Assembly: GCA_002269645.1 (NCBI GenBank)
Contig: NIVC01003002.1
Coordinates: 1-32,215, forward strand
Reading direction: 5' to 3'
Length of the DNA: 32,215 nt
Origin: Macrostomum lignano
Taxonomy: Eukaryota
Each line of letters opens with the position of its first letter. The first letter of the stretch is position 1. A program made the translations under genes and the position numbers. Under the pieces are notes generated by a model that saw only the letters and a program-made list of their open reading frames with translations, was not told where the DNA came from and searched no databases. Of the stretch, positions 2,950-32,215 are shown piece after piece.

Positions 2950-3592
2950 CTGCATCATCGATAGGAGTGAGATGTCTGGGCCCTGCATCATAGATAGGAG
3001 TGAGATGTCTGGCTGGCCCCTGCATCATAGATAGGAGTGAGATGTCTGGCTGGCCCCTGCATCATAGATAGGAGTGAGATGTCTGGCTGGCCCCTGCATC
3101 ATAGATAGATGTGAGATGTCTGGCAGCTGCATCATAGATAGGGGTGAGATGTCTGGCAGCTGCATCATAGATAGGGGTGAGATGTCTGGCTGGCCCCTGC
3201 ATCATAGATAGATGTGAGATGTCTGGGCCCTGCATCATAGATAGGGGTGAGATGTCTGGGCCCTGCATCATAAATAGGGGTGAGATGTCTGGGCCCTGCA
3301 TCATAAATTGGGGTGAGATGTCTGGCTGGCCCCTGCATCATAGATAGGGGTGAGATGTCTGGCTGGCCCCTGCATCATAGATAGGGGTGAGATGTCTGGC
3401 TGGCCCCTGCATCATAGATAGGGGTGAGATGTCTGGCTGGCCCCTGCATCATAGATAGGGGTGAGATGTCTGGCCCCCGCATCATAGATAGATGTGAGAT
3501 GTCTGGGCCCCGCATCATAGATAGGGGTGAGATGTCTGGCTGGCCCCAGCATCATAGATAGGGGTGAGATGTCTGGGCCCTGCATCATAGAT
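2950..3592. repeat. 33-37 nt minisatellite (CTGCATCATAGATAGGGGTGAGATGTCTGG[CTGG]CCC), about 18 copies
   Basis: Direct tandem repetition with a 4-nt indel variant (with or without CTGG). Confidence 0.95.
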
Positions 3593-4484
3593 ATTGATAT
3601 GTAAAATAGATATATTAAAGTCCTGTTTTGCAAATATAGTCATTTGTTTCAGTGTGCATATTCTTACCGGATTATCCCACAGCTGATTATGCCAGCCCCT
3701 CTATTTTTCCTCTCGTGTCGAGCAAACTCGCCTCGCGAAGCCTTGAACAGCAAGCATCGCATTTGTTAATATACGAGCTACTACTCGTGTACAGAAATTA
3801 TTCTGTTTTGATGTATCAATTTTTATGTATTCCCTCTGCTGTGACCAGTGAGTTGGCTTAAATTGGTAATAAAACAGCTATATTGGCAAATATTTAGATT
3901 TAAGCTGATTGTTTTTGCATTTTGCATGAAAATATGCCCCGACATTTGTCTCTAAACTTTGTAGACATTAAGCAACCATAAACCCCCTTTTTGTTGCTGT
4001 TGCTCCAATTTATTTGTTTTCGGTTCAACACTTGACAGCTTAAACAGTATGCATTAATTCGCTTACAAATATATTTTATTTATAAGCGCCATTTTTGGTC
4101 TGAAAGACCTTGGAACAAATATTGCTTTTTCACCAGCTATAATCTTTAACAACACCTTTAACCCTAACTGCGAATACACGACATTCAAACGACTGTTATA
4201 AGAATTATAAACCAATAATCACGTTTTTTTCGAATTCTGAGCAATGAGCAACTCATGTTTAACTTAGTCTAAACGATTCTCGCGAGGGCTTGCTATTTCA
4301 GTTTTAAAGGGCTATAGATTACAGAAGCACATGATGCAGAAGTCATGATAAAGTCCTGTTGAAAACAATTGCTTTTCAAGTAGGTCCTTTAACGACCCGT
4401 TCACTGATAGTGAAGCTCAGTCAGTCCCTCGATGACAAATCAAGATCAGTTTAGTTCATTTGTAAATTCATTAGCTCAGTTCAC

Positions 4485-5460
4485 CAGTGGCACAATTTGA
4501 GTCTCAGTTTTTATCAGTGACGCAATTTGAGGCACAATGAATTAGCGACACATTTTGAGGCCCACTTTCATTAGTGACACAATTTGAGGCTCACTTTCAT
4601 CAGTGACACAATTTGAGGCTCAGTTTTTATCAGTGACACATTTTGAGGCTCACTTTCATCAGTGACAAATTTTGAGGCTCAGTTTCATCAGTGACACAAT
4701 TTGAGGCCCAGTTTTTATCAGTGACGCAATTTGAGGCACAATGAATTAGTGACACATTTTGAGGCTCACTTTCATCAGTGACACAATTTGAGGCCCAGTT
4801 TTTATCAGTGACGCAATTTGAGGCACAATGAATTAGTGACACATTTTGAGGCTCACTTTCATCAGTGACACAATTTGAGGCCCAGTTTTTATCAGTGACG
4901 CAATTTGAGGCACAATGAATTAGTGACACATTTTGAGGCTCACTTTCATCAGTGACACAATTTGAGGCTCAGTTTTTATCAGTGACACATTTTGAGGCTC
5001 AGTTTCATCAGTGACACAATTTGAGGCCCAATTTTTATCAGTGACGCAATTTGAGGCTCAGTTTTTATCAGTGACGCAATTTGAGGCTCAGTTTTTATCA
5101 GTGACGCAATTTGAGGCTCAGTTTTTATCAGTGACGCAATTTGAGGCTCAGTTTCATCAGTGACACAATTTGAGGCTCAGTTTTCATCAGTGACGCAATT
5201 TGAGGCCCAGTTTTTATCAGTGACGCAATTTGAGGCACAATGAATTAGTGACACATTTTGAGGCTCACTTTCATCAGTGACACAATTTGAGGCTCAGTTT
5301 TCATCAGTGACGCAATTTGAGGCTCACTTTCATCAGTGACAATTTGAGGCTCAGTTTTTATCAGTGACGCAATTTTGAGGCTCACTTTCATCAGTGACAA
5401 TTTGAGGCTCAGTTTTTATCAGTGACGCAATTTGAGGCTCAGTTTCATCAGTGACACAAT
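4485..5460. repeat. About 28-30 nt minisatellite (CAGTGACACAATTTGAGGCTCAGTTTTTAT and variants), about 33 copies, with a local 87-nt three-monomer higher-order repeat
   Basis: Direct tandem repetition. The 87-nt period shows as a 29-aa repeat in antisense track ORF 4630-4929. Confidence 0.95.
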
Positions 5461-5586
5461 GTGGCAAATTAGGCAAAAAATTAGGCAAATTCAACACGCT
5501 TGACTCAAAGCCAGCAATGTGGCTTTGCTATATCACACAATGCCATGTAATAAAGATTTATATTACCGTTGCACTCTGTCAAACAG

Positions 5587-6177
5587 CAAATGCCAACAAT
5601 GCCAACACTCATCATGCATTACCAAACACAGCAAGAGCGCCAGCGCAGTCGCAATCTCAGTGCGCACCTGGCCTTGGCAAACTGTTCATTAATTCCGGCC
5701 AAGCAAGATTTCGAATGCCCGATCTGCATCACGGACGTATCGGCAGAGTGCGATGCGGACGGCATTCAATTGCGCGACTGCGGCCACGAGGTGTGCCGAG
5801 AGTGCCTGCGCCAGCACCTGCTCCACGCCGACTCCATGCCAGTCCGCTGTCCGCACGATCAGTGCCAGCAGACGGTGACCGATTCGGAGGCCAACCAGTT
5901 GCTAACCAGTCAAGAATTCGACCGGTTGCAACGGTTGGGCCTTCGACAAGCCGAAGCTGTCATACCCAACACGTTCCACTGCGTGGCGCCTAACTGCGAC
6001 GCCTTCGTTGAGCTGGCCGAAGATGTTAACAGCTTCGAGTGCATGCTGTGCGGCCTGCACAACTGCGTCACGTGTCGGGCCTCGCATCCGGGCGTCAGCT
6101 GTCGGCGATACCAGAACCAGCTGAGGATTGACGCTAAGAATAATAAGGAGGCCCAGCTCAATCTGACGCACCTGGAG
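5587..6177 (+). CDS. RBCK1: HOIL-1/RBCK1-like RBR E3 ubiquitin ligase, exon encoding RING1 and IBR
   Basis: RING1 (CPIC..LRDCGHEVCREC..CP..C) and IBR (FHCVAPNC..DVNSFECMLC..NCVTCRASH..SC..YQ) match remembered human HOIL-1 (CPVC..LRECLHTFCREC; YHCKTPDC..DVNEFTCPVC..NCLLCKAIH..NCKEYQ). Upstream HYQTQQERQRSRNLSAH matches QYQQRKQQQQEGNYLQH. Acceptor aaacag at 5586; donor GAG|gtgagc at 6177/6178, phase 0. The 5' boundary is uncertain (first ATG is at 5590). Confidence 0.9.
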
Positions 6178-6200
6178 GTGAGCGCTGCTGCGGCTGGGAC

Positions 6201-6976
6201 AGGGGCCTGAGGTGGATTAGTGATAGGGGCCTGAGGCGGATTAGTGATAGGGGGCTGAGGCGGATTAGTGATAGGGGCCTGAGGCGGATTAGTTATATAA
6301 GACTGAGGCGGATTAGTGATATGGGACTGAGGCGGATTAGTGATAGGGGCCTGAAGCGGATTAGTGATAGGGGCCTGAGGCGGATTATTTATATGAGACT
6401 GAGGCGGATTAGTGATATGGGACTGAGGCGGATTAGTGATAGGGGCCTGAGGCGGATTATTTATATGAGACTGAGGCGGATTAGTGATATGGGACTGAGG
6501 CGGATTAGTGATAGGGGCCTGAGGCGGATTAGTGATAGGGGACTGAGGCAGATTAGTGATAGGGGCCTGAGGCGGATTAGTGATAGGGGCCTGAGGCGGA
6601 TTATTTATATGAGACTGAGGCGGATTAGTGATATGGGACTGAGGCGGATTAGTGATAGGGGCCTGAGGCGGATTAGTGATAGGGGCCTGAGGCGGATAAG
6701 TGATAGGAGCCTGAAACGGATTAGTGCAATAGCTAGAAGCCTGAAATGGATTGGTGATACGGGCCTGAGGCGGATTAGTGATACGGGCCTGAGGCGGATT
6801 AGTGATAAGGGACTGAGGCAGATTAGTGATAGGGGACTGAGACAGATTAGTGATAGGGGACTGAGGCAGATTAGTGATAGGGGACTGAGGCGGATTAGTG
6901 ATGAGGGACTGAGGCGGATTGATTAGTGTGATAAAACTGATAGGATTAGTGAGATGAGATGAGGCAGATTAGTGAT
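6201..6976. repeat. 24-nt minisatellite (GGGGCCTGAGGCGGATTAGTGATA), about 32 copies, filling the RBCK1-like intron 6178-7056
   Basis: Direct tandem repetition between the donor at 6178 and the acceptor at 7056. Confidence 0.95.
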
Positions 6977-12114: not shown

Positions 12115-13239
12115 TACTGTGGGGAGAAGCATTGCAAATAAATAATTGATAATAACAGTTTTTTTACTTATAACTAAATAAAAAAATTAGATAATATTTA
12201 TTTAGCTAGCATTACTTAAATAAGGCTTATTTTTTAGCCAATTTCAGTCAAATATAAGTTCATAGCAATTAAAGGTCAGATAGTGTCTTGATTTTGATCC
12301 CAAAGTCCTGGAATCTTGACTCTAAAATGAGAATAAAAATAGGTTTTGATGATTCAAAATTGATAAAATTAGTAATTATTTAAATTCATTTTATTTCAAC
12401 TTTTAGTTGTTACTTTGTTTACTACTATTGTTTTTACTTTTTGATTTTAATCTTAACCATATGGACCTACAAACTGTGGTACAAAAGACCTAATCTCAAT
12501 TCCTTAATCCTAATCCCAAACTCAAGAAAAAAATTATTCATAATCCTAATCTTGCCTGATGACTTAAATCCTATCTGATCTCTATTAACAATGTCTGTTC
12601 AATCAAAGTTATTCAAAATTGATTGAACAATATAATTAAACAGGTTGAGATTTATGAAAAGCAATTGAGCCATAAAGTCCATCATTTTGATATTTTTAAA
12701 GATTTATGATAAATAGATATAGGCAACTCGTCTTTAATTTACTATTTATAATTTTTGGCATATACTATTATTCAAGGTATGACATTTTACTATGCCATAA
12801 AGTTGAGCTAATGATGTAAAAAATAATTTAAAAACTTTTTTGGAAAGCAAATTTGGATTTTATATATATATAATAGGCAATAAGACTTTCTTTATTATTG
12901 TTATATTCCAATTCAAGCATTTCTAAGCACCTGCAAAAGTGGAATTTTTAATATGCACAATATGCTTTTTCAATGTTTTAATAGTGTTACAAAATTGATT
13001 GTATATACAGTAATATACTTATAAAGAAAAGTGTTATATTAGCATTATATGTAAATAAAACTGTAGTGTCTTTAGATATTGCTTTTAAATGTAAACAAAT
13101 TTAAATTTTTTGCACTTATTTCAGCTGCAGTGTTATATTTAATAATAATTTTCTTTTTATAATATTTTGTCACACACATTGCAGTATTTCATAAAATAAT
13201 TATCCACCTGTCCCACCACCGCTGCTTCTTCGCAGAAAC

Positions 13240-14027
13240 ATGGGCACCAGCGCCGAGGATGTCAGTCCTAGTCGGCCGCAGCTTTCCTGTCCGTCTGTTT
13301 GTCCTCTGTGCGGCAGCGGAGTTCGCATAGCTCAGTGCGGCTGGATGCGAGCAATGCCAGTGTGCGACAATGCCCAGTGTCTGTACCCTATGGTGTCCGA
13401 GCTGCCTGCGCCAAACCTAGCCAGGCCCTACACAGACATGCCAGCTAGTCCGCCAGCTGCTAGTTCATCTTCTCCGACAGCTAAATTAGATCATTCCGAT
13501 GCTGACAGCCAGGCTGTATCTATTGAATCAGTTAGCCATCTGCCAGTGGAACCAGATGAAGTGTTTGTTCACACAATGACCGAGCCTGATCGGTCTGGTC
13601 CGTTTACTGCCGCCGCGCTAACTACTGTTCTCTGCGGTCCTGTCCAGCGGCGAGCCAGTGCGGCAGCTTCAACTTCATCCGGCACCCTGGCCGCGTGCAG
13701 CCGCGCCTACGCTAAAGCGCTGCGACTAACCAGAGCGTCGTTGCACCCGGCGCAGGTCTCCTCTGGACGAGTTTCAACGAGGCGTCAGTTTCGCAATTTG
13801 GAACTTGTCGGCCTGGCCGATATTGAGCGGTCGGTGCTGCGCGAGCTGGACTCGCTAGATAGATTAGTGGCTAAGCCACTCTCCCTAAGCGTCAGCGATG
13901 TTCGCGACGATTTTTATGAGACCGCGCATCGGCTATTGAAATCCGACAAGCGATTGGCTAAACAATTCCAGTCTGTTCACACCCTGCGCCAGGTCTGCAC
14001 TGTGTGCTTTAAGCAGCACGTTAGCCG
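13240..14027 (+). CDS. USPL1: USPL1-like protein, exon 1 (N-terminal Cys motif and start of the peptidase-like domain)
   Basis: CPLCG..x..VCDNAQCLYPM resembles the USPL1 N-terminal CPAC..LCEDLQCIYPL motif. AHRLLKSDKRLAKQFQSVHTLRQVCTVCFKQHVSR aligns with USPL1 AFPLLLKLETHIEKLFLYSFSWDFECSQCGHQYQNR. Donor CG|gtaagt at 14027/14028, phase 2. Alignment is from memory. Confidence 0.75.
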
Positions 14028-14729
14028 GTAAGTAGATGAATAATTTTTGTTTTTTAACACACATGCCCAATAATTAGAAAGTCAGTGCGCTGACGCCTGT
14101 GTGTGCTCAGAAGTTAGCAGAATGAGTAGAATTGCCTCGGCGCTGAGAGTTCGTTTTCGTGTGAACAATTACAGCAATTGTGATTTTGGTCCAGATCAAG
14201 GTTTTAGTCTAGTAAGATTCTTAGACAGTGCTTAACAAAAACTTAATGGCCATTTTTGTGTTTCTGAGAACACAGCGTTATTAACGCTCGTATTGGGTTT
14301 GTTAAGCGTCAGAATTGCAGTGCCATTTGGCATCCTGGGTCCAAGTTCAGATCTTTAAACAAGTTTCAAATTCAAAATCAAACAAAATATCAACACCTCT
14401 CTACCTCTACCCTTTACACTGCTAAGTCTCCAAGTCTCTTTGACAATTGATAGAAGTCTTGAAAATCCTAAAATCCATATAATTATAGAGTTATTAATGC
14501 CTGAAACAGAGGTTAAAATACAAAAAATATATAATTTAAACCAAATAATATCCAGCTTAGAAAAAAACAGGGTGCCAATGTTTAACCCAAGGTTGAAATT
14601 TAGGATAACAAAATTAATTTAACGCACGCTATGACAAAAAGCCAGTGTAAGACAGAGCAGTACTTCATTAATTTATTACCGTTTCGTATTCGCAATAATA
14701 AAAAATGCACAACTACTCTCATTTGTTAG

Positions 14730-14863
14730 ACAAAAAGCCACCGTACTACGATTAAGCGATCCGGCTACAGATTTCGATCTATTTGATCCCAACAAGCGAG
14801 TTTCTTGCGGCCTTGCCAACACTGCAGGGCGCCGCAGCAGCGCGTTTTGTTGCGCTGGGAAAA
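14730..14863 (+). CDS. USPL1: USPL1-like exon 2, containing an apparent 1-nt deletion at about 14801-14803
   Basis: Acceptor ctctcatttgttag at 14729 fits phase 2 (R-QKATVLRLSDPATDFDLFDPNKRV). After restoring one T it reads FLRPCQHCRAPQQRVLLRWEK, matching USPL1 HFGPCNNCNSKSQIRKMVLEK. Donor AA|gtacgc at 14863/14864. This exon is not in the ORF track. Confidence 0.7.
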
Positions 14864-14953
14864 GTACGCGTTGAACTTATGTTGACTAATAATTTAATGT
14901 ATTTGTTTGAGACAATGGGATTTTAATTGTCAAGTCTTGTAATTTTTCTCCAG

Positions 14954-15156
14954 ATCCTCAGACGGCCGCCAGCCAATCTCGGACGCAGTTTTCCTAGAGG
15001 CCCGCGACGGCTTGCCCGGCCCAATCCAGCTGAATAAGAGCCTGCGCACGCACGATGGCCTGGCCCTGATACCTACGGCTGCTGTGCAACGATTGACTCG
15101 TAGCAGCCAATCTAACAATCAATTTTATTACGTTATTTGGCTATACAGTCGGGACA
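14954..15156 (+). CDS. USPL1: USPL1-like exon 3 (His-box region)
   Basis: Acceptor tttttctccag at 14953, phase 2, matching exon 2. SDAVFLEARDGLP..DGLALIPTAAVQ..NNQFYYVIWL aligns with USPL1 SPIFMLHFVEGLP..EGCLYQITSVIQ..NNHFITWI. Donor A|gtaagt at 15156/15157, phase 1. This exon is not in the ORF track. Confidence 0.75.
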
Positions 15157-15835
15157 GTAAGTTTTGCTTTAATAACTAGCCGACTCTAGTGTGCTTGCGT
15201 GTGTGGTCTGACTGGACTCGCAGATACTATACTAGACCTGCCACTTGGCCAAATTGGCCATTTCAAAATTTGGAGAGGACGCAATCGTAAAAGTTGTTAG
15301 AGCAAGAACAAAACTAGTCGGTTAACTGGTTAAAAATAATAAAACGGGTCAAACTGTTTTCTAAGCTAAATACTTTCTACTGTACTGAAAGTGTGTGTGT
15401 AGCACGTTCTAGAATCCATTATACTAAAATTTCCATTTCTGTCTTTTATTAGGGTGTGTTAGTCTAGTGTCTAGTCTGTGTGAATGAATATTATACTTGT
15501 GCCTGTTTTCTATCATAGTGTTTTAAGTACAAGTATTGATTATATAAATGCTATTGTATGTATATTTGTAGACAGTCTTTGTGTCTTACCACTTTAGGGC
15601 AAGCCCGCATCGGTGATCGAAGTGTTATTAATTCGATTCTTGTCGAAAATAGCACTTATTGTGCTGATGCGAGATTGCGATATACTTATAGTCAGGTGTG
15701 GACTTTGCAGAAAAGAAAACGAAATCTTTACGGCTTGCTAAAACAAAAAAAATTGTTTAATCTATTGAGAATTACATATAAACTATAAATCTGAATTGAA
15801 AATCAGTTATGCAAAAAGAACCGAAGTTCACAGCT

Positions 15836-17914
15836 AGAAACCGACTTTACGGCTTACCAGCATTACCTAGTCCTAAAAATCCAGTCAGAAACCGACTTTG
15901 CGGCTTTCCAACATTACCTAAAAATCCAGTCAGAAACCGACTTTACGGCTTACCAGCATTACCTAGTCCTAAAAATCCAGTCAGAAACCGACTTTGCGGC
16001 TTACCAGCATTACCTAGTCCTAAATATCCAGTCAGAAACCGACTTTACGGCTCACCAGCATTACCTAGTCCTAAATATCCAGTCAGAAACCGACTTTACG
16101 GCTTACCAGCATTACCTAGTCCTAAAAATCCAGTCAGAAACCGACTTTGCGGCTTTCCAACATTACCTAAAAATCCAGTCAGAAACCGACTTTACGGCTT
16201 ACCAGCATTACCTAGTCCTAAAAATCCAGTCAGAAACCGACTTTGCGGCTTACCAGCATTACCTAGTCCTAAATATCCAGTCAGAAACCGACTTTACGGC
16301 TCACCAGCATTACCTAGTCCTAAATATCCAGTCAGAAACCGACTTTACGGCTTACCAGCATTACCTAAAAATCCAGTCAGAAACCGACTTTACGGCTTTC
16401 CAACATTACCTAAAAATCCAGTCAGAAACCGACTTTACGGCTTACCAGCATTACCTAGTCCTAAATATCCAGTCAGAAACTGACTTTACGGCTTACCAGC
16501 ATTACCTAGTCCTAAATATCCAGTCAGAAATCGACTTTACGGCTTACCAGCATTACCTAGTCCTAAATATCCAGTCAGAAACCGACTTTACGGCTTACCA
16601 ACATTACCTAAAAATCCAGTCAGAAACCGACTTTACAGCTTACCAACATTATCTAAATATCCAGTCAGAAACCGACTTTACGGCTTACCAACATTATCTA
16701 AATATCCAGTCAGCAACCGACTTTACGGCTTACCAACATTATCTAAATATCCAGTCAGAAACCGACTTTACGGCTTACCAACATTATCTAAATATCCAGT
16801 CAGAAACCGACTTTACGGCTTACCAACATTATCTAAATATCCAGTCAGAAACCGACTTTACGGCTTACCAACATTATCTAAATATCCAGTCAGAAACCGA
16901 CTTTACGGCTTACCAACATTATCTAAATATCCAGTCAGAAACCGACTTTACGGCTTACCAGCATTACCTAGTCCTAAATATCCAGTCAGAAATCGACTTT
17001 ACGGCTTACCAGCATTACCTAGTCCTAAATATCCAGTCAGAAACCGACTTTACGGCTTACCAACATTACCTAAAAATCCAGTCAGAAACCGACTTTACGG
17101 CTTACCAACATTATCTAAATATCCAGTCAGAAACCGACTTTACGGCTTACCAACATTATCTAAAAATCCAGTCAGAAACCGACTTTACGGCTTACCAACA
17201 TTATCTAAATATCCAGTCAGAAACCGACTTTACGGCTTACCAACATTATCTAAATATCCAGTCAGAAACCGACTTTACGGCTTACCAACATTATCTAAAA
17301 TCCAGTCAGAAACCGACTTTACGGCTTACCAACATTATCTAAAATCCAGTCAGAAACCGACTTTACGGCTTACCAACATTATCTAAATATCCAGTCAGAA
17401 ACCGACTTTACGGCTTACCAACATTATCTAAATATCCAGTCAGAAACCGACTTTACGGCTTACCAACATTACTTAAATCCAGTCAGAAACCGACTTTACG
17501 GCTTACCAACATTATCTAAATATCCAGTCAGAAACCGACTTTACGGCTTACCAACATTATCTAAAAATCCAGTCAGAAACCGACTTTACGGCTTACCAAC
17601 ATTATCTAAAATCCAGTCAGAAACCGACTTTACGGCTTACCAACATTATCTAAAAATCCAGTCAGAAACCGACTTTACGGCTTACCAACATTATCTAAAA
17701 ATCCAGTCAGAAACCGACTTTACGGCTTACCAACATTATCTAAAATCCAGTCAGAAACCGACTTTACGGCTTACCAACATTATCTAAATATCCAGTCAGA
17801 AACCGACTTTGCGGCTTACCAACATTATCTAAATATCCAGTTAGAAACCGACTTTATGGTTTGCTAATAATACCAAAAAATCCAGTCAGAAACCGACTTT
17901 ACGCCTTACCAGCA
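15836..17914. repeat. 45/51-nt minisatellite (CCAGTCAGAAACCGACTTTACGGCTTACCAACATTATCTAAATAT; the 51-nt form has an extra TAGTCC), about 45 copies, in USPL1-like intron 3
   Basis: Direct tandem repetition. Mixed 51/45-nt units on the left change to almost pure 44-45-nt units on the right. Confidence 0.95.
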
Positions 17915-18813
17915 TTTTTTGTAAGAGAACTTTACGCCTTACCAGCCTACAGAAAAATAATTTTGGATTAGAAAATTTTATTGCCTTTAAAACTAAAAAA
18001 ACGATTCTTGTATAAAGTATAAAAGATCTAATTAAAAACCACGCGGTGCCTAAAATCATTATAAATCAAGAGTCTTCCCAGTGAGAGACTGACTTTACGG
18101 CTATATAGTTGCGAATGATAATTATTAAGCACAAAGGAAGGAGCCAGTGCGGCTTGGTGGCGGCTCGCGAATCAACTTCAAGAAGGTTCGACTAAGGTAA
18201 AATGCTCCTTCCTGATGAGTTGCTTACTTGCTCTACATATAGTTTGATTAAGTCAGGCTCCCACTGAACAAATGGTCTTGAAAAGTTAGCCATTAATCGC
18301 GTGCAACAAAACTCATTGAAAAGTTGAAATTCAAGTAAGTTCCGACCCGACTTATCTGCAAGCATCCAGTTTCGTTAATAAACCGTAGATTATAAGTAAT
18401 TTTTGCTCCCTTTGATGCCGTCTGGGTTTCCTTTACACTCACTCTAATAATCTCGTGACTAAAAAATGTGCCAAGCAATAAACAGTATATCAAGCGTCAA
18501 TATAAAAATGCCAATCTAGAGGTGAAATTGATTGATAAGTCGGGTAAGTCTGGCTATCGACCATAGACAAAACGAATGACTTCTACACTGGCACCACAGG
18601 TTGGCATTCTATGTTTACGCTCGATATTCTATGGTAATATCTGGTCTGACCTGTCAATAAAGTTAAGCATACGTAATTGGTACAGTCAACAATTAGCTCA
18701 TATTAAAAACAGGTAACAGAATTTAGTCTCCTTTTTAGCCCAAGCTGCTTCTCTTAAACTGTGCCATTTTAACCCTACCAGACCGATATCTGTCACTATA
18801 TATTAATCTGTAG

Positions 18814-19604
18814 ATGCCCGCTGGATGCGCCTGGGTCCAAATAGCGACTCTGCTCTGCCGGCCCTGGCCTGCCATGACATTGCCTCGGCGCCGAACTTTC
18901 AGTCTGGCGAATTAGTCGCCGCACTGTTTGAACGCGACTGTCCAGCTGGCGACGCTGGCGGCACAGAGCCGTCTAGTAGCTTTACTAAAACCTGCGACGG
19001 GTCTGGGCGGAGCTCGGCCGCTCTGCCTCCAGTTTATCGACAGCCACCCGCTGCTGCTGCTGTGACCGCTCCGCCAGTTGCTGCGACCGCCGATGCCAAC
19101 AATGACGAGTTGGACCTTCTAGACGAATTGTTCGGCACGCCTCCGCCGCAGTCCACAGTAAGCCCCAGCGCCAACCTTCAATCAAGACTTCGTTCCGTGA
19201 TGGCAAAACGTCGCGCCGATTCGGCCGTTTCGTCAGCGTCGGCGTCTGTCGGTGCAGCCTCGGTTCGTTCGGATCCGACAGTTTGCGGCCAGCTGCCGCT
19301 GCCGGCCAGCTCCGGCCGCGGTTTTGTACTGTCGCGTTTCCTCAGCTCCGCCGCTAAGCCGGCCGACGATCGACGACTGCCGGCTTACAGCGAGGACCGA
19401 CACCTGCTAGCGCCGGCTGACGAGCAGCCGCGCCGGCGACGGCGACCCGGCTCTGTCGGCGAGGAGGAACAGGAGCAGCAGGCGGCTGAAGCATCGGCAG
19501 CGCTACGGGCCGAGCCGCAGTTGAAGCGGGTGCGCACAGCGGAACAGGGACTGCAGGTGGATGCGCAGCGGGCATCGCTACTAGAGTTGGCCAAGTTCAA
19601 ATAA
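18814..19604 (+). CDS. USPL1: USPL1-like exon 4 (end of the peptidase-like domain and a low-complexity C-terminus)
   Basis: Acceptor taatctgtag at 18813; phase 1 joins exon 3 in frame (N-ARWMRLGPN..FQSGELVAALFER vs USPL1 GSWLECDDL..VPASEIHIVIWER). Stop TAA 19602-19604. The four exons plus the one restored base total 1917 nt (638 aa). Confidence 0.72.
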
Positions 19605-19770
19605 ATTATAAATATTAACCCTATAGTTTGGACACCCAAACAGTGCTCCTTTGCCGTAATGCGCCGTCTATTTGTATATAAGCTTGTTCTGTTCTCTTAA
19701 TGTCAGTTATGCAGCCTGTGCGGTCTTTGTGTGTTTAACTATTTGCTTGCTATAAGCATTATCTGAATAT

Positions 19771-20370: not shown

Positions 20371-20644
20371 TTAGCCTGGCTGGGACTGGACATCCCAGTA
20401 GGCCGGAGGCGGCGGCTGCTGCGACAGATTAATCGGGTATGGTGGCGGCTGTTGCTGCTCCTGTCCGTAGTAGTTTAACGGCTGCTCAGTCGGCTTGTTG
20501 ATCAAGTCATTTGAAGCTGGAGCCAAGGTCGGCCGATTATCATGGCCACCCGCGGCTACAACAATCGGTTCTGCTACTTGAACGTTTGACATTTGTAGCG
20601 CCGGATTGGTGTGCGCCACGGATACTGAGGCGCTTTGCGATTGG
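20371..20644 (-). CDS. Shisa-like gene A, terminal exon: cytoplasmic tail with two PPxY motifs
   Basis: Acceptor aatttcag (20645), phase 2. Reads QSQSASVSV..QQQQPPPYP..QQPPPPAYWDVQSQPG*. Length is 1+273 nt. Confidence 0.85.
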
Positions 20645-21344
20645 CTGAAATTTAGGTGTACATGGCATATTACATGTACACATGATTGAGTCTTGGGCGG
20701 ATTTTGACCTCCGTTGGTATTGTCAGATTCGATTATGACTACTGAGAAAAGTATACAAATAAAGATTTGAATCGTAGAATGTATCACATATCGCAAAGAT
20801 GTCACGAAACGTCTGTGCACACAGAGTGGTGGGAAAGTACGATGTGTGATAATGGCCGACTGACAGAGGCAAACCAAGCCAGAAACCGGTCTCGGTATGC
20901 CTGCATGAAGTTTGACCCATTTTTTAGTATCACAGGTAAATTGAGTGCGAATGATTCATCATGTCAGAATTTCTCTATTGATAAGTAGAAAGTATGGAGT
21001 GTAGCGCGAAAAATCTATGCAATGAACATACTAGACGTTGTTCAGCGCTAGCCTAGCTCACACATTGGATGGAGCCAGTTGAGGGCAATATCACACCCAG
21101 GTACATGCCATGTACAGTTGTACACGACAGAACTGACGATTTTGGCCCAAGGACAGTTATTTTACAGGAAAACTATAGCTATTGAAGGTGATCTTCTAAA
21201 CTATTAACATTAACTTTAACGGTAAACTCTAACTTTAGCTGGTTCATTTTTGTCACTATAGTTTCCCAAAAGCTTGAAACATTAAGCATCTTCAACACGA
21301 GAAAATGTTTTATGATATAATCTACCTTCACGAACTTTACGCAC

Positions 21345-21519: not shown

Positions 21520-24500
21520 CTCATGATTCATATGAGCTTGATCTCATGATTGTTATGAGCTTGATCTCGTGACTGTTATGAGCTTGATCTCATGATTCAT
21601 ATGAGCTTGATCTCATGATTGTTATGAGCTTGATCTCGTGACTGTTATGAGCTTGATCTCATGACTGTTATGAGCTTGATCTCATGATTGTTATGAGCTT
21701 GATCTCATGATTGTTATGAGCTTGATCTCATGATTGTTATGAGCTTGATCTCGTGACTGTTATGAGCTTGATCTCATGACTGTTATGAGCTTGATCTCAT
21801 GATTGTTATGAGCTTGATCTCGTGACTGTTATGAACTTGATCTCATGATTGCTATGAGCTTGATCTCGTGATTGTTATGAGCTTGATCTCGTGATTGCTA
21901 TGAGCTTGATCTCATGATTGCTATGAGCTTGATCTCATGACTGTTATGAGCTTGATCTCGTGACTGTTATGAGCTTGATCTCATGATTGTTATGAGCTTG
22001 ATCTCGTGACTGTTATGAACTTGATCTCATGATTGCTATGAGCTTGATCTCGTGATTGTTATGAGCTTGATCTCGTGATTGCTATGAGCTTGATCTCATG
22101 ATTGCTATGAGCTTGATCTCATGACTGTTATGAGCTTGATCTCATGATTGTTATGAGCTTGATCTCATGATTGTTATGAGCTTGATCTCGTGATTGTTAT
22201 GAGCTTGATCTCATGATTGCTATGAGCTTGATCTCGTGATTGTTATGAGCTTGATCTCGTGATTGCTATGAGCTTGATCTCATGATTGCTATGAGCTTGA
22301 TCTCATGACTGTTATGAGCTTGATCTCATGATTGCTATGAGCTTGATCTCATGATTGTTATGAGCTTGATCTCATGATTGCTATGAGCTTGATCTCATGA
22401 TTGCTATGAGCTTGATCTCATGATTGTTATGAGCTTGATCTCATGATTGCTATGAGCTTGATCTCATGATTGCTATAGCTTGATCTCATGATTGCTATGA
22501 GCTTGATCTCATGATTGCTATGAGCTTGATCTCATGATTGCTATGAGCTTGATTTCACTCTTCACATGAGCTTGATCTCATAATTGCTATGAGCTTGATT
22601 TCACTCTTCTCATGAGCTTGATCTCATAATTGTTATGAGCTTGATTTCACTCTTCTCATGAGCTTGATCTCATGATTGTTATGAGCTTGATCTCATGATT
22701 GTTATGAGCTTGATCTCATGATTGTTATGAGCTTGATCTCATGATTGTTATGAGCTTGATCTCATGACTGTTATGAGCTTGATCTCATAATACTTATGAG
22801 ATTGATCTCATGATTTTTATGAGCTTGATCTCATTATTCTTATGAGCTTGATCTCATGATTTTTATGAGCTTGATCTCATGATTCTTATGAGCTTGATCT
22901 CATGATTTTTATGAGCTTGATCTCATGATTGTTATGAGCTTGATCTCGTGACTGTTATGAGCTTGATCTCATGACTGTTATGAGCTTGATCTCATGATTG
23001 TTATGAGCTTGATCTCATGATTGTTATGAGCTTGATCTCATGATTGTTATGAGCTTGATCTCATGATTCTTATGAGCTTGATCTCATGATTTTTATGAGC
23101 TTGATCTCATGATTGTTATGAGCTTGATCTCATGATTGTTATGAGCTTGATCTCATGATTGTTATGAGCTTGATCTCATGATTGTTATGAGCTTGATCTC
23201 GTGACTGTTATGAGCTTGATCTCATGACTGTTATGAGCTTGATCTCATGATTGTTATGAGCTTGATCTCGTGACTGTTATGAGCTTGATCTCATGACTGT
23301 TATGAGCTTGATCTCGTGACTGTTATGAGCTTGATCTCATGACTGTTATGAGCTTGATCTCATGATTGCTATGAGCTTGATCTCATGATTGTTATGAGCT
23401 TGATCTCATGATTGTTATGAGCTTGATCTCGTGACTGTTATGAGCTTGATCTCGTGACTGTTATGAACTTGATCTCATGATTGCTATGAGCTTGATCTCG
23501 TGATTGTTATGAGCTTGATCTCGTGATTGCTATGAGCTTGATCTCATGATTGCTATGAGCTTGATCTCATGACTGTTATGAGCTTGATCTCGTGACTGTT
23601 ATGAGCTTGATCTCATGATTGCTATGAGCTTGATCTCGTGATTGTTATGAGCTTGATCTCATGATTGCTATGAGCTTGATCTCGTGACTGTTATGAGCTT
23701 GATCTCATGATTGTTATGAGCTTGATCTCATGATTGTTATGAGCTTGATCTCATGATTGTTATGAGCTTGATCTCGTGATTGTTATGAGCTTGATCTCAT
23801 GATTGTTATGAGCTTGATCTCATGATTGTTATGAGCTTGATCTCATGATTGTTATGAGCTTGATCTCATGACTGTTATGAACTTGATCTCATGATTGTTA
23901 TGAGCTTGATCTCGTGATTGTTATGAGCTTGATCTCGTGATTGCTATGAGCTTGATCTCATGATTGCTATGAGCTTGATCTCATGACTGTTATGAGCTTG
24001 ATCTCATGATTGTTATGAGCTTGATCTCATGATTGTTATGAGCTTGATCTCGTGATTGTTATGAGCTTGATCTCATGATTGCTATGAGCTTGATCTCATG
24101 ATTGTTATGAGCTTGATCTCATGATTGTTATGAGCTTGATCTCATGATTGCTATGAGCTTGATTTCACTCTTCACATGAGCTTGATCTCATAATTGCTAT
24201 GAGCTTGATTTCACTCTTCTCATGAGCTTGATCTCATAATTGTTATGAGCTTGATTTCACTCTTCTCATGAGCTTGATCTCATGATTGTTATGAGCTTGA
24301 TCTCGTGACTGTTATGAGCTTGATCTCATGATTGTTATGAGCTTGATCTCGTGACTGTTATGAGCTTGATCTCATGATTCATATGAGCTTGATCTCATGA
24401 TTGTTATGAGCTTGATCTCGTGACTGTTATGAGCTTGATCTCATGATTGTTATGAGCTTGATCTCATGATTGTTATGAGCTTGATCTCGTGACTGTTATG

Positions 24501-25412
24501 AGCTTGATCTCATGATTGTTATGAGCTTGATCTCATGATTGTTATGAGCTTGATCTCGTGATTGTTATGAGCTTGATCTCGTGACTGTTATGAGCTTGAT
24601 CTCATGACTGTTATGAGCTTGATCTCATGATTGTTATGAGCTTGATCTCGTGACTGTTATGAACTTGATCTCATGATTGCTATGAGCTTGATCTCATGAT
24701 TGCTATGAGCTTGATCTCGTGATTGCTATGAGCTTGATCTCGTGATTGCTATGAGCTTGATCTCATGATTGTTATGAGCTTGATCTCATGATTGCTATGA
24801 GCTTGATCTCATGATTGTTATGAGCTTGATCTCATGATTGCTATGAGCTTGATCTCATGATTGCTATAGCTTGATCTCATGATTGCTATGAGCTTGATCT
24901 CATGATTGCTATGAGCTTGATCTCATGATTGCTATGAGCTTGATTTCACTCTTCACATGAGCTTGATCTCATAATTGCTATGAGCTTGATTTCACTCTTC
25001 TCATGAGCTTGATCTCATAATTGTTATGAGCTTGATTTCACTCTTCTCATGAGCTTGATCTCATGATTGTTATGAGCTTGATCTCATGATTGTTATGAGC
25101 TTGATCTCATGATTGTTATGAGCTTGATCTCATGATTGTTATGAGCTTGATCTCATGACTGTTATGAGTTTGATCTCATGATTCCTATGAGCTTGATCTC
25201 ATGATTTTTATGAGCTTGATCACATTATTCTTATGAGCTTGATCTCATGATTGTTATGAGCTTGATCTCATGATTTTTTGAGCTTGATCTCATGATTCTT
25301 ATGAGCTTGATCTCATGACTTTTATGAGCTTGATCTCATGATTTTTATGAGCTTGATCTCATGATTCTTATGAGCTTGATCTCATGACTTTTATGAGCTT
25401 GATCTCATGATT
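21520..25412. repeat. 23-nt satellite (ATGAGCTTGATCTCATGATTGTT), about 169 copies, filling about 98% of intron 21450-25426
   Basis: Direct tandem repetition. The unit has a short internal inverted repeat (ATGAG..CTCAT). Variant blocks recur at about 22551, 24161 and 24942. Confidence 0.97.
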
Positions 25413-26146: not shown

Positions 26147-27120
26147 CATGACAATCTACCTGACTCACTGCATGACAATCTACCTGACTGACTGCATGAC
26201 AATCTACCTGACTCACTGCATGACAATCTACCTGACTCACTGCATGACAATCTACCTGACTCACTGCATGACAATCTACCTGACTCACTGCATGACAATC
26301 TACCTGACTCACTGCATGACAATCTACCTGACTCACTGCATGACAATCTACCTGACTCACTGCATGACAATCTACCTGACTCACTGCATGACAATCTACC
26401 TGACTCACTGCATGACAATCTACCTGACTCACTGCATGACAATCTACCTGACTCACTGCATGACAATCTACCTGACTCACTGCATGACAATCTACCTGAC
26501 TCACTGCATGACAATCTACCTGACTCACTGCATGACAATCTACCTGACTCACTGCATGACAATCTACCTGACTCACTGCATGACAATCTACCTGACTCAC
26601 TGCATGACAATCTACCTGACTCACTGCATGACAATCTACCTGACTCACTGCATGACAATCTACCTGACTCACTGCATGACAATCTACCTGACTCACTGCA
26701 TGACAATCTACCTGACTCACTGCATGACAATCTACCTGACTCACTGCATGACAATCTACCTGACTCACTGCATGACAATCTACCTGACTCACTGCATGAC
26801 AATCTACCTGACTCACTGCATGACAATCTACCTGACTCACTGCATGACAATCTACCTGACTCACTGCATGACAATCTACCTGACTCACTGCATGACAATC
26901 TACCTGACTCACTGCATGACAATCTACCTGACTCACTGCATGACAATCTACCTGACTCACTGCATGACAATCCACCTGACTCACTGCATGACAATCTACC
27001 TGACCCACTGCATGACAATCTACCTGACACACTGCATGACAATCTACCTGACTCACTGCATGACAATCTATACCTGACCCACTGCATGACAATCTACCTG
27101 AAACTGCATATCTATCTACC
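26147..27120. repeat. 24-nt minisatellite (CATGACAATCTACCTGACTCACTG), about 40 near-identical copies, filling an intron of Shisa-like gene A
   Basis: Direct tandem repetition. The core is essentially invariant, with variants mainly at the high-coordinate end. Confidence 0.97.
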
Positions 27121-27138
27121 TGATACTGTACTACAATT
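27120..27138 (-). CDS. Predicted 19-nt microexon of Shisa-like gene A (NCSTVS + G)
   Basis: Flanked by gtgcacag (27139) and CAG|gtagat (27119). It converts phase 0 to phase 1, exactly what is needed to join the signal-peptide exon to the next exon, giving ..LLLAI-NCSTVSA-GSSSGARGGG. Confidence 0.55.
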
Positions 27139-27930: not shown

Positions 27931-28081
27931 TGAGAATCTCTGAAGATCTTTGAGAATCTCTGAAGATCTCTGAGGATCTCTGAAGATCTCTGAGGATCTC
28001 TGAAGATCTCTGAGGATCTCTGAAGATCTCTGAGGATCTCTGAAGATCTATGGGAATCTTTGAGGATCTCTGAGGATCTCA
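27931..28081. repeat. 10/20-nt microsatellite (ATCTCTGAGG/ATCTCTGAAG)
   Basis: Direct tandem repetition that grades into the adjacent complex satellite. Confidence 0.92.
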
Positions 28082-30900
28082 TATATTTCTAGAGATATCT
28101 CTAAGGATCCCTATGGATCTATGGCGATCTCATATATTTCTAGAGATATCTAAGGATCGCTAGAGATCTCTGACGATCTCAAACATTTCTAGAGATATCT
28201 AAGGATCGCTAGAGATCTCTGGGGATTTTTGGTGGGTCTCTAGGTATCCCTGGGGATCTCAAATATTTCTAGAGATATCTAAGGACGCTAGGGATCTCTG
28301 GCGTTCTCAAATATTTCTAGAGATATCTAAGGATCGCTAGAGATCTCTGGGGATTTTTGGTGGGTCTCTAGGTATCCTGGGGATCTCAAATATTTCTAGA
28401 GATAACTAAGGATCGCTAGGGATGTCTGGCGATCTCGAATATTTCTGGGGATATCTAAGGATCGCTAGAGATCTCTGGGGATTTTTTGGGGGTCTCTAGG
28501 TATCTCTGGGGATCTCAAATATTTCTAGCGATATCTAAGGATCGCTAGGGATGTCTGGCGATCTCGAATATTTCTGGGGATATCTAAGGATCGCTAGAGA
28601 TCTCTGGGGATTTTTTGGGGGTCTCTAGGTATCTCTGGGGATCTCAAATATTTCTAGCGATATCTAAGGATCGCTAGGGATGTCTGGCGATCTCGAATAT
28701 TTCTGGGGATATCTAAGGATCGCTAGAGATCTCTGGGGATTTTTTGGGGGTCTCTAGGTATCTCTGGGGATCTCAAATATTTCTAGCGATATCTAAGGAT
28801 CGCTAGGGATGTCTGGCGATCTCGAATATTTCTGGGGATATCTAAGGATCGCTAGAGATCTCTGGGGATTTTTTGGGGGTCTCTAGGTATCTCTGGGGAT
28901 CTCAAATATTTCTAGCGATATCTAAGGATCGCTAGGGATGTCTGGCGATCTCGAATATTTCTGGGGATATCTAAGGATCGCTAGAGATCTCTGGGATTTT
29001 TTGGGGGTCTCTAGGTATCTCTGGGGATCTCAAATATTTCTAGCGATATCTAAGAATCGCTAGGGATGTCTGGCGATCTCAAATATTTCTGGGGATATCT
29101 AAGGATCACTAGAGATCTCTGGCGATCTCAAACATTTCTAGAGATATCTAAGGATCGCTAGAGATCTCTGGGGATTTTTGGTGGGTCTCTAGGTATCCCT
29201 GGGGATCTCAAATATTTCTAGCGATATCTAAGGATCGCTAGGGATGTCTGGCGATCTCGAATATTTCTGGGGATATCTAAGGATCGCTAGAGATCTCTGG
29301 GGATTTTTTGGGGGTCTCTAGGTATCTCTGGGGATCTCAAATATTTCTAGCGATATCTAAGGATCGCTAGGGATGTCTGGCGATCTCGAATATTTCTGGG
29401 GATATCTAAGGATCGCTAGAGATCTCTGGGGATTTTTTGGGGGTCTCTAGGTATCTCTGGGGATCTCAAATATTTCTAGCGATATCTAAGGATCGCTAGG
29501 GATGTCTGGCGATCTCGAATATTTCTGGGGATATCTAAGGATCGCTAGAGATCTCTGGGGATTTTTTGGGGGTCTCTAGGTATCTCTGGGGATCTCAAAT
29601 ATTTCTAGCGATATCTAAGGATCGCTAGGGATGTCTGGCGATCTCGAATATTTCTGGGGATATCTAAGGATCGCTAGAGATCTCTGGGGATTTTTTGGGG
29701 GTCTCTAGGTATCTCTGGGGATCTCAAATATTTCTAGCGATATCTAAGGATCGCTAGGATGTCTGGCGATCTCGAATATTTCTGGGGATATCTAAGGATC
29801 GCTAGAGATCTCTGGGGATTTTTTGGGGGTCTCTAGGTATCTCTGGGGATCTCAAATATTTCTAGCGATATCTAAGGATCGCTAGGGATGTCTGGCGATC
29901 TCGAATATTTCTGGGGATATCTAAGGATCGCTAGAGATCTCTGGGGATTTTTTGGGGGTCTCTAGGTATCTCTGGGATCTCAAATATTTCTAGCGATATC
30001 TAAGGATCGCTAGGGATGTCTGGCGATCTCGAATATTTCTGGGGATATCTAAGGATCGCTAGAGATCTCTGGGGATTTTTTGGGGGTCTCTAGGTATCTC
30101 TGGGATCTCAAATATTTCTAGCGATATCTAAGAATCGCTAGGGATGTCTGGCGATCTCAAATATTTCTGGGGATATCTAAGGATCACTAGAGATCTCTGG
30201 CGATCTCAAATATTTCTAGAGACATCTAAGGATTGCTAGGGATGTTTGGCGATCTCAAATATTTCTGGGGATATCTAAGGATCGCTAGAGATCTCTGGCG
30301 ATCTCATGTATTTCTAGGGATATCTAAGCATCGGTAGGGATCTCTGGGGATTTTTTGGGGGTCTCTAGGTATCTCTGGGGATCTCAAATATTTCTAGAGA
30401 TATCTAAGGATCGCTAGGGATCTCTGGCGATCTCATATTTTTAGAGATAACTAAGGATCGCTAGGGATGTCTGGCGATCTCAAATATTTCTGGGATATCT
30501 AAGGATCGCTAGAGATCTCTGGCGATCTCAAACATTTCTAGAGATATCTAAGGATCGCTAGAGATCTCTGGCGATCTCATATATTTCTAGGGATATCTAA
30601 GTATCGCTAGGGATCTCTGGGGATTTTTTGGGGGTCTCTAAGTATCTCTGGGATCTCAAATATTTCTAGAGATATCTAAGGATCGCTAGGGATCTCTGGC
30701 GATCTCATATTTCTAGAGATAACTAAGGATCGCTAAGGTCTCTGGCGATCTCATATATTTCTAGGGATATCTAAGCATCGGTAGGGATCTCTGGGGATTT
30801 TGGGGGTCTCTAGGGATCTCTGGGGATCTCAAATATTTCTAGGGATATCTAAAGATCTCGAGAATATTTGGGTAACTCTGAGAATCTCTGAGAGGATCTC
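28081..30900. repeat. Complex satellite with a 129-bp higher-order unit (49+49+31 nt) made of about 10-nt submonomers
   Basis: GATCTCAAATAT recurs at 28511, 28640 and 28769 (period 129). Edges are dominated by less regular 49-mers. Confidence 0.95.
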
Positions 30901-31037
30901 TGAGAATATTTTAGCAAAATGACATAAGGATTTCTGCTGACTAGAGTGTTCCAGAGAAATCAAATCCTTGAGAATCCAAAAACCCTGCCCGAGTCCCTGA
31001 AGATCCTGTCAAGTCGCTCAGCTCATTGCTGAGCGCC

Positions 31038-31326: not shown

Positions 31327-31527
31327 CTGCGCGAAGAAGATGATTATTTATGACACATGCATGAGGTACGAGTAGTATGGATCATTCCTGTCTCTAAATT
31401 CTGTCACAAAGTTAAATCTAAAAATATTTCCCTGAAAATGATGCTTTTAGAAGCTCTTAACTTCAAACTTCTTGTACATGTACTAACCAACTTCCAAAGC
31501 TTAAAAGATGCCTAACTTCATATTCCT

Positions 31528-31660
31528 CCAAGTTTAACATTCTCCAAGTTAAACATTCTCCAAGGTAAACATTCTTCAGGCTAAACATTCTCCAAGGTAA
31601 ACATTCCCCAAGCTAAACATTCCCCAAGTTAAACATTCCCCTAGCTATAAACATTTCCCA
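31528..31660. repeat. 16-nt minisatellite (CAAGTTAAACATTCTC), about 8 copies, in intron 31327-31792
   Basis: Direct tandem repetition with substitutions. Confidence 0.85.
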
Positions 31661-31903: not shown

Positions 31904-31919
31904 CTGGGTGGTTGGGTGG

Positions 31920-32215
31920 AGTCAAGTGTGAGTCAAGTGTGAGTCAAATGTGAGTCAACTATGAGTCAAATGTGAGGAAACTGTGAGTCAACTATGAATC
32001 TGGTGTGAGTCAAATGTCAGTCAACTATGAATCAAGTGTGAGTCAACTATGAGTTAAGTGTGAGTCAATGTGAGTCAAGTGTAAGTCAAGTGTGAGTCAA
32101 CTATGAATCAAGTGTGAGTCAAGTGTGAATCAAATGTGGGTCAACTGTGAGTCAACTATGAGTCAACTATGATTCAGATATGAGTTTAGTCTAGTGTAAG
32201 ATAGCTCTGAACTCA
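31920..32215. repeat. 10-11 nt microsatellite (GTGTGAGTCAA / CTATGAGTCAA), intronic in gene B, runs off the window end
   Basis: Direct tandem repetition. Confidence 0.9.

Follow-up and report, generated by a model that had tools for sequence, protein, structure and literature searches.

The SUMO isopeptidase USPL1 is built in vertebrates from an N-terminal motif, CPxC...CxNxQCL(Y/F)P, followed by a USP-like domain (PDB 7P99), and the human enzyme carries the catalytic triad Cys236/His456/Asp472 (PMC8983731). Catalytically inactive human USPL1 rescues the knock-down phenotypes of Cajal-body disruption and proliferation arrest (Schulz 2012, as related in PMC10919355), and human USPL1 is found at snRNA genes in association with the little elongation complex (PMC10919355; PMC3937775). 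The current work concerns a USPL1-like gene of the flatworm Macrostomum lignano, located on the plus strand at positions 13240-19604 of contig NIVC01003002.1 (assembly GCA_002269645.1); the whole analysed stretch of 32,215 nt is called the window below. The gene probably encodes a catalytically dead but maintained member of the USPL1 family, and the single lesion carried by this copy is most likely a consensus error.

The M. lignano protein shares with vertebrate USPL1 the N-terminal motif, the four zinc-binding Cys of the finger, the equivalents of Trp460 and Trp468, and a terminal strand of the form (I/L)x(W/F)ER, whereas Cys236, His456, Asp472 and Asn231 have no functional equivalent in it. 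Identity to human and vertebrate USPL1 is about 16-20%. In comparison with these, two extra residues are found in or beside the His-box strand, and the tail is short (about 220 aa), without significant similarity to the C-terminal region of vertebrate USPL1. A lophotrochozoan relative, the annelid USPL1 of Dimorphilus gyrociliatus (DgyrCDS3312, P0077), has the same architecture. Its WMRCDD aligns with the flatworm WMRLGP, and the spacing from the His box to the Trp is equal if His456 is paired with Tyr366. The annelid protein differs, however, in that it keeps the full triad, scores 147.6 bits on the Pfam family Peptidase_C98 and also matches PF00443.

Within M. lignano, the paralogue A0A1I8ITY3 (P0003, 440 aa), which lies outside the window, is 34% identical to the window protein and has also lost the triad, its His and Asp boxes reading CFDYIAWL...RWMAMSS. 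The tail motifs LxxRLxSVM and (F/Y)V(L/M)SRFL are shared. The deposited model of this paralogue differs in having neither the N-terminal motif nor the first CxxC pair, which may be a gene-model problem.

Pseudo-deubiquitinases are common. USP39/Sad1 and PAN2/USP52 retain a USP fold without catalytic residues, which is put to use for binding or scaffolding in complexes of nuclear RNA processing. These proteins belong to other USP subfamilies of the ubiquitin lineage, in contrast to the SUMO-directed C98 branch, and no specific sequence relationship to them was detected in this analysis.

Homology to USPL1

The corrected window protein, that is, the 638-aa frame with one T added in exon 2, scored 20.3 bits (E 4.8e-4) against Peptidase_C98 (PF15499; MEROPS C98), under the curated cut-off of 27 bits; this match depends on the presence of the full exon 2 in the model. 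P0002, a 66% identical protein from a relative of M. lignano, passed the same cut-off with 29.4 bits, so that the profile check proposed in the original prediction fell short for the window and succeeded for its relative. No other Pfam family, PF00443 included, was matched by the window protein.

Profiles were compared with a reference set of 17 true USPL1 domains (16 vertebrate and 1 annelid), in which the human catalytic-domain sequence was 100% identical to PDB 7p99_A over 285 residues. A four-sequence Macrostomum profile, which is thin (effective number of sequences, Neff, 1.3) and for which hhalign gives pairwise E-values, matched this set locally with a probability score (Prob) of 96.2 and E 2.4e-9 over 205 columns, and globally with Prob 97.1 and E 1.3e-10 (205-284 columns across modes). 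An earlier, built-in profile comparison between Macrostomum and USPL1 had given Prob 94.5 and E 7.5e-8.

A separate match is provided by the N-terminal motif, C21-P-L-C24...C42-D-N-A-Q-C47-L-Y-P50 in the window protein, which aligned in hhalign with vertebrate USPL1 N-termini (Prob 96.4, E 1.3e-9). The Macrostomum sequence SVCPLCGSG...VCDNAQCLYPMVSE corresponds to CPWC...LCTNPQCLFPLVS in fish, and the pattern CPxC...C(x)NPQC(L/I)(F/Y)PL is carried by 27 vertebrate sequences as well as by both Macrostomum sequences; no Pfam model exists for this motif. The four zinc ligands of the finger are kept as C253/C256 (CTVC) and C292/C295 (CQHC), equivalent to human C361/C364 and C397/C400. The motif, both CxxC pairs and the likeness to USPL1 had all been named in the original prediction, and each of them was recovered.

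A hidden Markov model (HMM) built from Macrostomum sequences only ranked two USPL1 chains at the top of 177,635 PDB sequences, with a score that is not significant (E 0.46). Neither phmmer nor hmmsearch with the thin profile gave a significant match in the PDB. When USPL1 rows were included in the alignment, AlphaFold2 (AF2) produced a model with a predicted local distance difference test (pLDDT) score of 72 and a predicted template-modelling (pTM) score of 0.71, for which the best Foldseek matches were four USPL1 chains (E 1e-13, template-modelling score 0.74-0.77, with 7p99_A on top at 0.77; other USPs <=0.5); since AF2 fails on the three Macrostomum rows alone (pLDDT 33), this fold match indicates compatibility and is not independent proof.

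A HMMER scan of 1.84 billion representatives with a two-sequence profile recovered only P0002 and the paralogue P0003; neither an intact paralogue nor any bridging sequence of another flatworm was among the matches. A word-indexed search with a vertebrate USPL1 profile returned one invertebrate protein, that of the annelid, and no Macrostomum protein; such a search is limited by word sharing, and the absence of an intact paralogue is thus not established.

Spurious likeness, or likeness derived from another USP subfamily, would make the product an unrelated zinc-binding protein. This explanation is scarcely credible. The Pfam score under the cut-off, the lack of a PDB match in phmmer and the failure of AF2 without USPL1 rows would be in line with it, but P0002 passes the curated cut-off, hhalign gives E-values of about 1e-9 over 205-284 columns, the N-terminal motif matches separately, no competing Pfam family is found, and the Macrostomum-only HMM puts USPL1 chains in the first two places among PDB sequences. 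On these sequence comparisons the window gene is accepted as a USPL1 homologue.

Catalytic and SUMO-contact positions

In the 17 true USPL1 domains, C236, H456, D472, N231, F457, W460 and W468 are invariant, bar one truncated sequence. In M. lignano, every alignment register tried leaves the three catalytic positions without the respective Cys, His and Asp, which agrees with the central claim of the original prediction. That prediction had put Pro121 (at 13600), Tyr366 (at 15126) and Gly383 (at 18834) in their places. All three residues lie exactly there; the pairing of Gly383 with Asp472 was reproduced, and the other two pairings represent one register among several.

For Cys236, the partner is Gly120 in the global hhalign alignment, Pro121 in the predicted register, and Pro116 or Asp117 in strand-anchored registers, and confidence in each is low. 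Residues 100-131 contain no Cys, the first being C132, and P0002 and P0003 also have no Cys at the position aligned with Cys236. As a tie-breaker, the spacing to the invariant Tyr157 favours Gly120/Pro121, but indels in the loop that follows confound it in both the paralogue and fish. The oxyanion residue Asn231 is paired with Thr112 or with a gap; the oxyanion-hole Asn is probably missing.

His456 corresponds to Tyr366 when Trp370 is taken as the anchor, as in the built-in profile comparison and MAFFT, with the His-to-Trp spacing then as in the annelid. It corresponds to Gln364 when NNHF is paired with NNQF and YY is treated as an insertion, as in the HMM alignments. Whichever register is taken, the M. 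lignano strand has no His, and the three Macrostomum family proteins share no invariant His. Around residues 358-366, P0002 reads NNHFYY where M. lignano reads NNQFYY, the first four letters being those of human NNHF, with the catalytic His and Phe457; the Cys box of P0002 is already absent. Provided that the HMM register is right, the comparison suggests a stepwise loss of the triad.

Asp472 is aligned with Gly383 in both hhalign runs (WLECD, or WMRCD in the annelid, against WMRLG), and the paralogue P0003 has Ser. From these alignments we conclude that the nucleophile and the Asp have been lost, as has the His in M. lignano. As the triad is lacking, the protein is a USPL1 homologue and not a member of the enzyme class.

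Several residues by which human USPL1 contacts SUMO2 are replaced in M. lignano as well: R324->S, M330->R, S332->D, F335->E, N398->Q, H421->E and H493->V. The annelid USPL1 is also without F335, N398, H421 and H493. Because this triad-bearing protein has likewise lost most of the contact residues, these positions are not diagnostic, and the suggestion in the original prediction that the protein might be a SUMO binder gains no support from the alignment.

Selection, gene copies and competing explanations

The ratio of non-synonymous to synonymous substitution rates (dN/dS, method NG86) between the corrected window and the relative's cDNA L001 (a 1,223-nt Logan contig, run SRR28338165) was 0.12 over 365 codons, with a dS of about 1.4-1.7 that is partly saturated. 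By region, the ratio was 0.09 in the N-terminal motif, 0.19 in the linker and 0.12 in the domain. The cDNA starts ATTGCATG|AGCCATGGGC, and its first 8 nt are the last 8 nt, ATTGCATG, of the M. lignano spliced leader CGGTCTCTTACTGCGAAGACTCAATTTATTGCATG (PMC8629364); the relative's mRNA therefore has a trans-spliced mature 5' end. Exons 1, 2 and 3 are joined contiguously in L001, which means that introns 1 and 2 are removed in this relative (66% protein identity). Its mRNA is thus both trans-spliced to the leader and cis-spliced. To judge from the relative, the acceptor cttcttcgcag of the window is likely used for trans-splicing in M. lignano.

The family is expressed in the relative, is under purifying selection and is not decaying. 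The 34% identical paralogue P0003 keeps the same triad-less architecture and tail motifs, and the pattern as a whole would fit a maintained non-catalytic protein, not a decaying family. Loss of catalytic residues, purifying selection and expression, which together characterize a pseudo-deubiquitinase, are all found, the evidence for expression coming from the relative's mRNA. The dN/dS check gave a result in line with the original prediction, and its view of a selected pseudo-enzyme holds at the level of the family; for this copy, the frame is broken.

Several observations, in homology, registers, frame and splicing, weigh against a dead but maintained USPL1 protein. To the sub-threshold Pfam score, the thin profile with its pairwise E-values and the AF2 failure described above must be added that the Cys-box region can be aligned only when the alignment is forced or global, at near-zero confidence and outside the statistically supported part, which makes the Cys-box register uncertain. 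The His-box register is ambiguous, and under the HMM register P0002 keeps the His (NNHF) and P0003 has a Cys. For the Asp box, a MAFFT alternative pairs Asp472-Asp473 with Ser386-Asp387 after a 3-residue insertion. Inactivity called from sequence can also be wrong: USP53 and USP54, long annotated as pseudoenzymes, proved active (PMC12037411). Unlike in USP53 and USP54, all three triad positions and the oxyanion Asn appear to be without suitable residues here.

A rival idea is that the protein is still an active cysteine isopeptidase through non-canonical residues, for example with Cys132 (LCG) as nucleophile. C132 is among the few Cys that are invariant outside the zinc pairs in all three Macrostomum family proteins, and in a low-confidence model made without a multiple sequence alignment it lies at a helix break, just before a helix. 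The His of P0002 and the precedent of USP53/USP54 as mis-called pseudoenzymes would also agree with an enzyme. Against this, C132 precedes the invariant Tyr157 by 25 residues, where the catalytic Cys of true USPL1 precedes it by 36-46, and it follows the VFVH strand by 21 residues instead of 5-6. With no conserved His in the family, Gly or Ser at Asp472, and Gln or Tyr at both His candidates in M. lignano, residual activity of this kind is very improbable.

The frame of the window copy raises a different objection. Compared with contig NIVC01000837.1 of the same assembly (L002) and with the relative's cDNA, exon 2 lacks one base in its T-run (14801-14803), which produces a frameshift: the window reads GAGTTTCTTG, L002 reads GAGTTTTCTTG and L001 reads GAGTCTTCCTG. 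Without correction, the frame that yields QKATVLRLSDPATDFDLFDPNKRV fails to run on into FLRPCQHC. The four exons of the original prediction are therefore real and have GT/AG borders, but they are not all in phase, exon 2 lacking one base, and the 638-aa protein is obtained with one added T and not from the window as it reads.

M. lignano has at least four near-identical copies of this USPL1-family gene, the locus being one of them. L002 and contig NIVC01003003.1 (L003, also in GCA_002269645.1) carry two others, and P0005 and P0006 represent further variants. Exon 1 is identical in the window and L002, and the two differ in coding sequence by 4 synonymous changes and no non-synonymous one. L003 is set apart from the window by 4 synonymous changes and 3 that are non-synonymous (G27A, V93A, V368F). 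The identity of L003 to the window is 97.4% in the 5' part and 99.1% in the rest, a mosaic pattern that would point to recombination or gene conversion among the copies. Across 2.9 kb, four 1-nt indels separate the window from L002, each of them a homopolymer run shorter by one in the window. Because every one of these runs is contracted in the window and none in L002, an assembly error is a likelier cause than a real loss, and the base missing from exon 2 most probably reflects a consensus error of long reads. Nowhere else in the 1,916 nt of coding sequence does the window have a stop or indel, and introns are present; the multiple lesions and neutral substitutions of a processed or decayed pseudogene are not seen in this copy.

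The window and L003, two of the four copies, nevertheless each lack a single, different base of exon 2, and this could reflect real erosion of redundant copies. In L003 (2895-2905) the first base of exon 2 is gone (gttag|CAAAAAG), outside any homopolymer, and the NCBI annotation divides its product into two fragments of 271 aa and 259 aa. On this view, a genuine frameshift would have disabled the window copy not long ago and made this duplicate a unitary pseudogene, whereas the multi-copy gene is otherwise functional. M. lignano is described, in PMC10468722 and PMC8629364, as a hidden polyploid with redundant scaffolds, so that spare copies can decay, and the deletion in the window stands against both L002 and the cDNA. 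Such a duplicate is unlikely, though to be taken seriously: apart from the single base, the window coding sequence equals that of L002 bar the four synonymous changes, the one-directional homopolymer contractions carry the signature of long-read consensus error, and 1.9 kb of coding sequence have gathered no additional stops or indels. The locus encodes a plausible natural pseudo-isopeptidase, of which this copy is mis-assembled or disabled.

The last objection concerns the junction of exons 3 and 4, which has no support from L001, where the sequence reads on into intron-like sequence. The junction check of the original prediction, carried over to the relative's cDNA, bore out exons 1-2-3 but not this junction. 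At positions 1123-1223, L001 passes the exon-3 donor GTAAGT for about 100 nt and stops just past a possible acceptor, ctccttag; intron 3 may be retained here, or the transcript may have an alternative 3' end, in which case the protein would measure about 374 aa and lack the last palm strands; an artefact of the assembly graph would be a third explanation. Support for the junction, SRD|NARWM, comes from other sides. The paralogue P0003 reads straight across it as WLFNSDSERWMAMS (NSDSERWM), and UniProt A0A1I8HDA4 (P0006, 632 aa) has the identical junction. Exon 4 also encodes the final strand of the USP domain, ELVAALFER (EIHIVIWER in human), and differs between the window and L002 at 3 positions, all synonymous.

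If the preferred reading of a dead but maintained protein is right, the M. lignano protein would not cleave SUMO conjugates and may act by binding, as a nuclear scaffold or adaptor. Human USPL1, which acts in Cajal-body integrity and snRNA-gene transcription independently of catalysis, would offer a parallel for such a scaffold role. It is possible, though doubtful, that Macrostomum has kept USPL1 solely for a non-catalytic job, with the nucleophile lost throughout the lineage (meaning the two paralogue families of M. lignano and the orthologue of the related species) and no intact USPL1 left in the genome. If true, this would be a natural separation-of-function allele, and the conserved core role of USPL1, scaffolding of Cajal bodies and snRNA genes, would be independent of deSUMOylation. 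Human cells need USPL1 for intact Cajal bodies and for proliferation, and the inactive mutant makes good its loss; a lineage without the catalytic apparatus in which the fold, zinc sites and N-terminal motif remain selected would be independent evidence for a conserved scaffold role. M. lignano is amenable to RNA interference and transgenesis, hence the idea is testable.

As the entry A0A1I8HDA4 contains the exon 3/4 junction, the four-exon model is already public. Its automatic name, "USP domain-containing protein", gives no hint of the probable loss of activity. The USPL1 homology and the triad loss appear to be undescribed: in the library searched, there was no paper linking USPL1 to flatworms or Macrostomum and none describing a dead USPL1, and two papers that name USPL1 alongside pseudoenzymes do not report such a case either.

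Gene structure and surroundings of the locus

Across exons 1-3, the spliced protein matches the M. lignano protein PAA76214.1 of NCBI (P0001, BOX15_Mlig016927g2). All splice borders are GT/AG, with the donors GTAAGT, GTACGC and GTAAGT for introns 1-3. The features of the locus and of the rest of the window are collected in Table 1.

Table 1. Positions of the USPL1-like gene, its parts and other features in the window
Feature	Position	Strand	Description or basis
Satellite arrays, upstream	1-478, 1424-2125, 2950-3593, 4480-5460, 6201-6920		
RING + IBR exon of an RBR-type E3 ubiquitin ligase	5569-6207	+	IBR E 1.4e-7; about 7 kb upstream of the USPL1-like gene
Putative spliced-leader trans-splice acceptor	13225-13235	+	Pyrimidine-rich cttcttcgcag, ends in AG, 4 nt 5' of ATG; from sequence
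Exon 1	13240-14027	+	Residues 1-262 + 2 nt; donor G|GTAAGT; N-terminal zinc-type motif (13300-13389), linker, thumb of USP-like domain, zinc pair CTVC (13996-14007); open reading frame, cDNA L001
Cys-box equivalent	13561-13635	+	V108-FVHTMTEPDRSGPFTAAALTTVL-C132; global hhalign, MAFFT, Tyr157 spacing; low alignment confidence
Exon 2	14730-14863	+	Finger strands, second zinc pair CQHC (14814-14825); 134 nt here, 135 nt in intact copies
Exon 3	14954-15156	+	Palm strands; donor A|GTAAGT; L001 and splice borders
His-box equivalent	15114-15143	+	N362-N-Q364-F-Y366-Y-V-I-W370-L; within exon 3
Intron 3	15157-18813		Holds the 45-bp tandem array
45-bp tandem array	15836-17916		About 45 copies, non-coding; inside intron 3
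Exon 4	18814-19604	+	Asp box, last palm strand ELVAALFER, tail; open reading frame, junction match with P0003/P0006
Asp-box equivalent	18822-18839	+	N377-A-R-W379-M-R-L-G383-P384; within exon 4
Putative polyadenylation signal	19600-19605	+	AATAAA, overlaps the stop codon; from sequence, function inferred
Stop codon	19602-19604	+	TAA; end of exon 4
168-aa open reading frame	20371-20877	-	Pro/Gln-rich end with PPPY- and PPPPAY-type motifs; one amino-acid difference in L002
Satellite arrays, downstream	21520-25412, 26147-27123, 27965-30902, 31526-31655, 31919-32166		

A 614-aa in-frame model can be drawn for the window when the internal AG at 14799-14800 is taken as acceptor (exon start 14801), at the cost of 24 residues between the zinc pairs. 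Exon 2 is used at full length in the cDNA and in the other copies, and for this reason the model was rejected; it had no Pfam match, and no PDB match in phmmer.

The tail of about 220 aa encoded by exon 4 is of low complexity, rich in Ala, Pro, Ser and Arg, with the basic clusters RRRRR and KRVR. An acidic-hydrophobic stretch, DELDLLDELF (19104-19133), resembles a SUMO-interaction motif. Against the vertebrate USPL1 C-terminal region, the tail gave no significant match (E 0.094); the best local pairing, also not significant, was that of DELDLLDELF with EDILEDLF near the C-terminus of bird USPL1.

The tandem array of intron 3 has a 224-aa open reading frame at 15809-16483 as a by-product of its 45-bp repeat. 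Intron 3 is about 850 nt shorter in L002, so that the repeat copy number varies between gene copies. Satellite DNA of short period (11 to 258 bp) makes up about one third of the window; among the arrays are one with 169 repeats of a 23-bp unit and one with 41 repeats of a 24-bp unit (98% identity). Several of these arrays produce long artefactual open reading frames on both strands.

The pairing of the RBR gene with the USPL1-like gene is kept in L002, where the product of the RBR counterpart (L002 1-3926) also has a weak match to a RanBP-type zinc ribbon. The position of an RBR ligase next to a dead SUMO-protease homologue is probably a coincidence. Downstream, the 168-aa open reading frame has no Pfam match; it is the first exon of a convergent neighbour gene, annotated on L002 as a 286-aa product.

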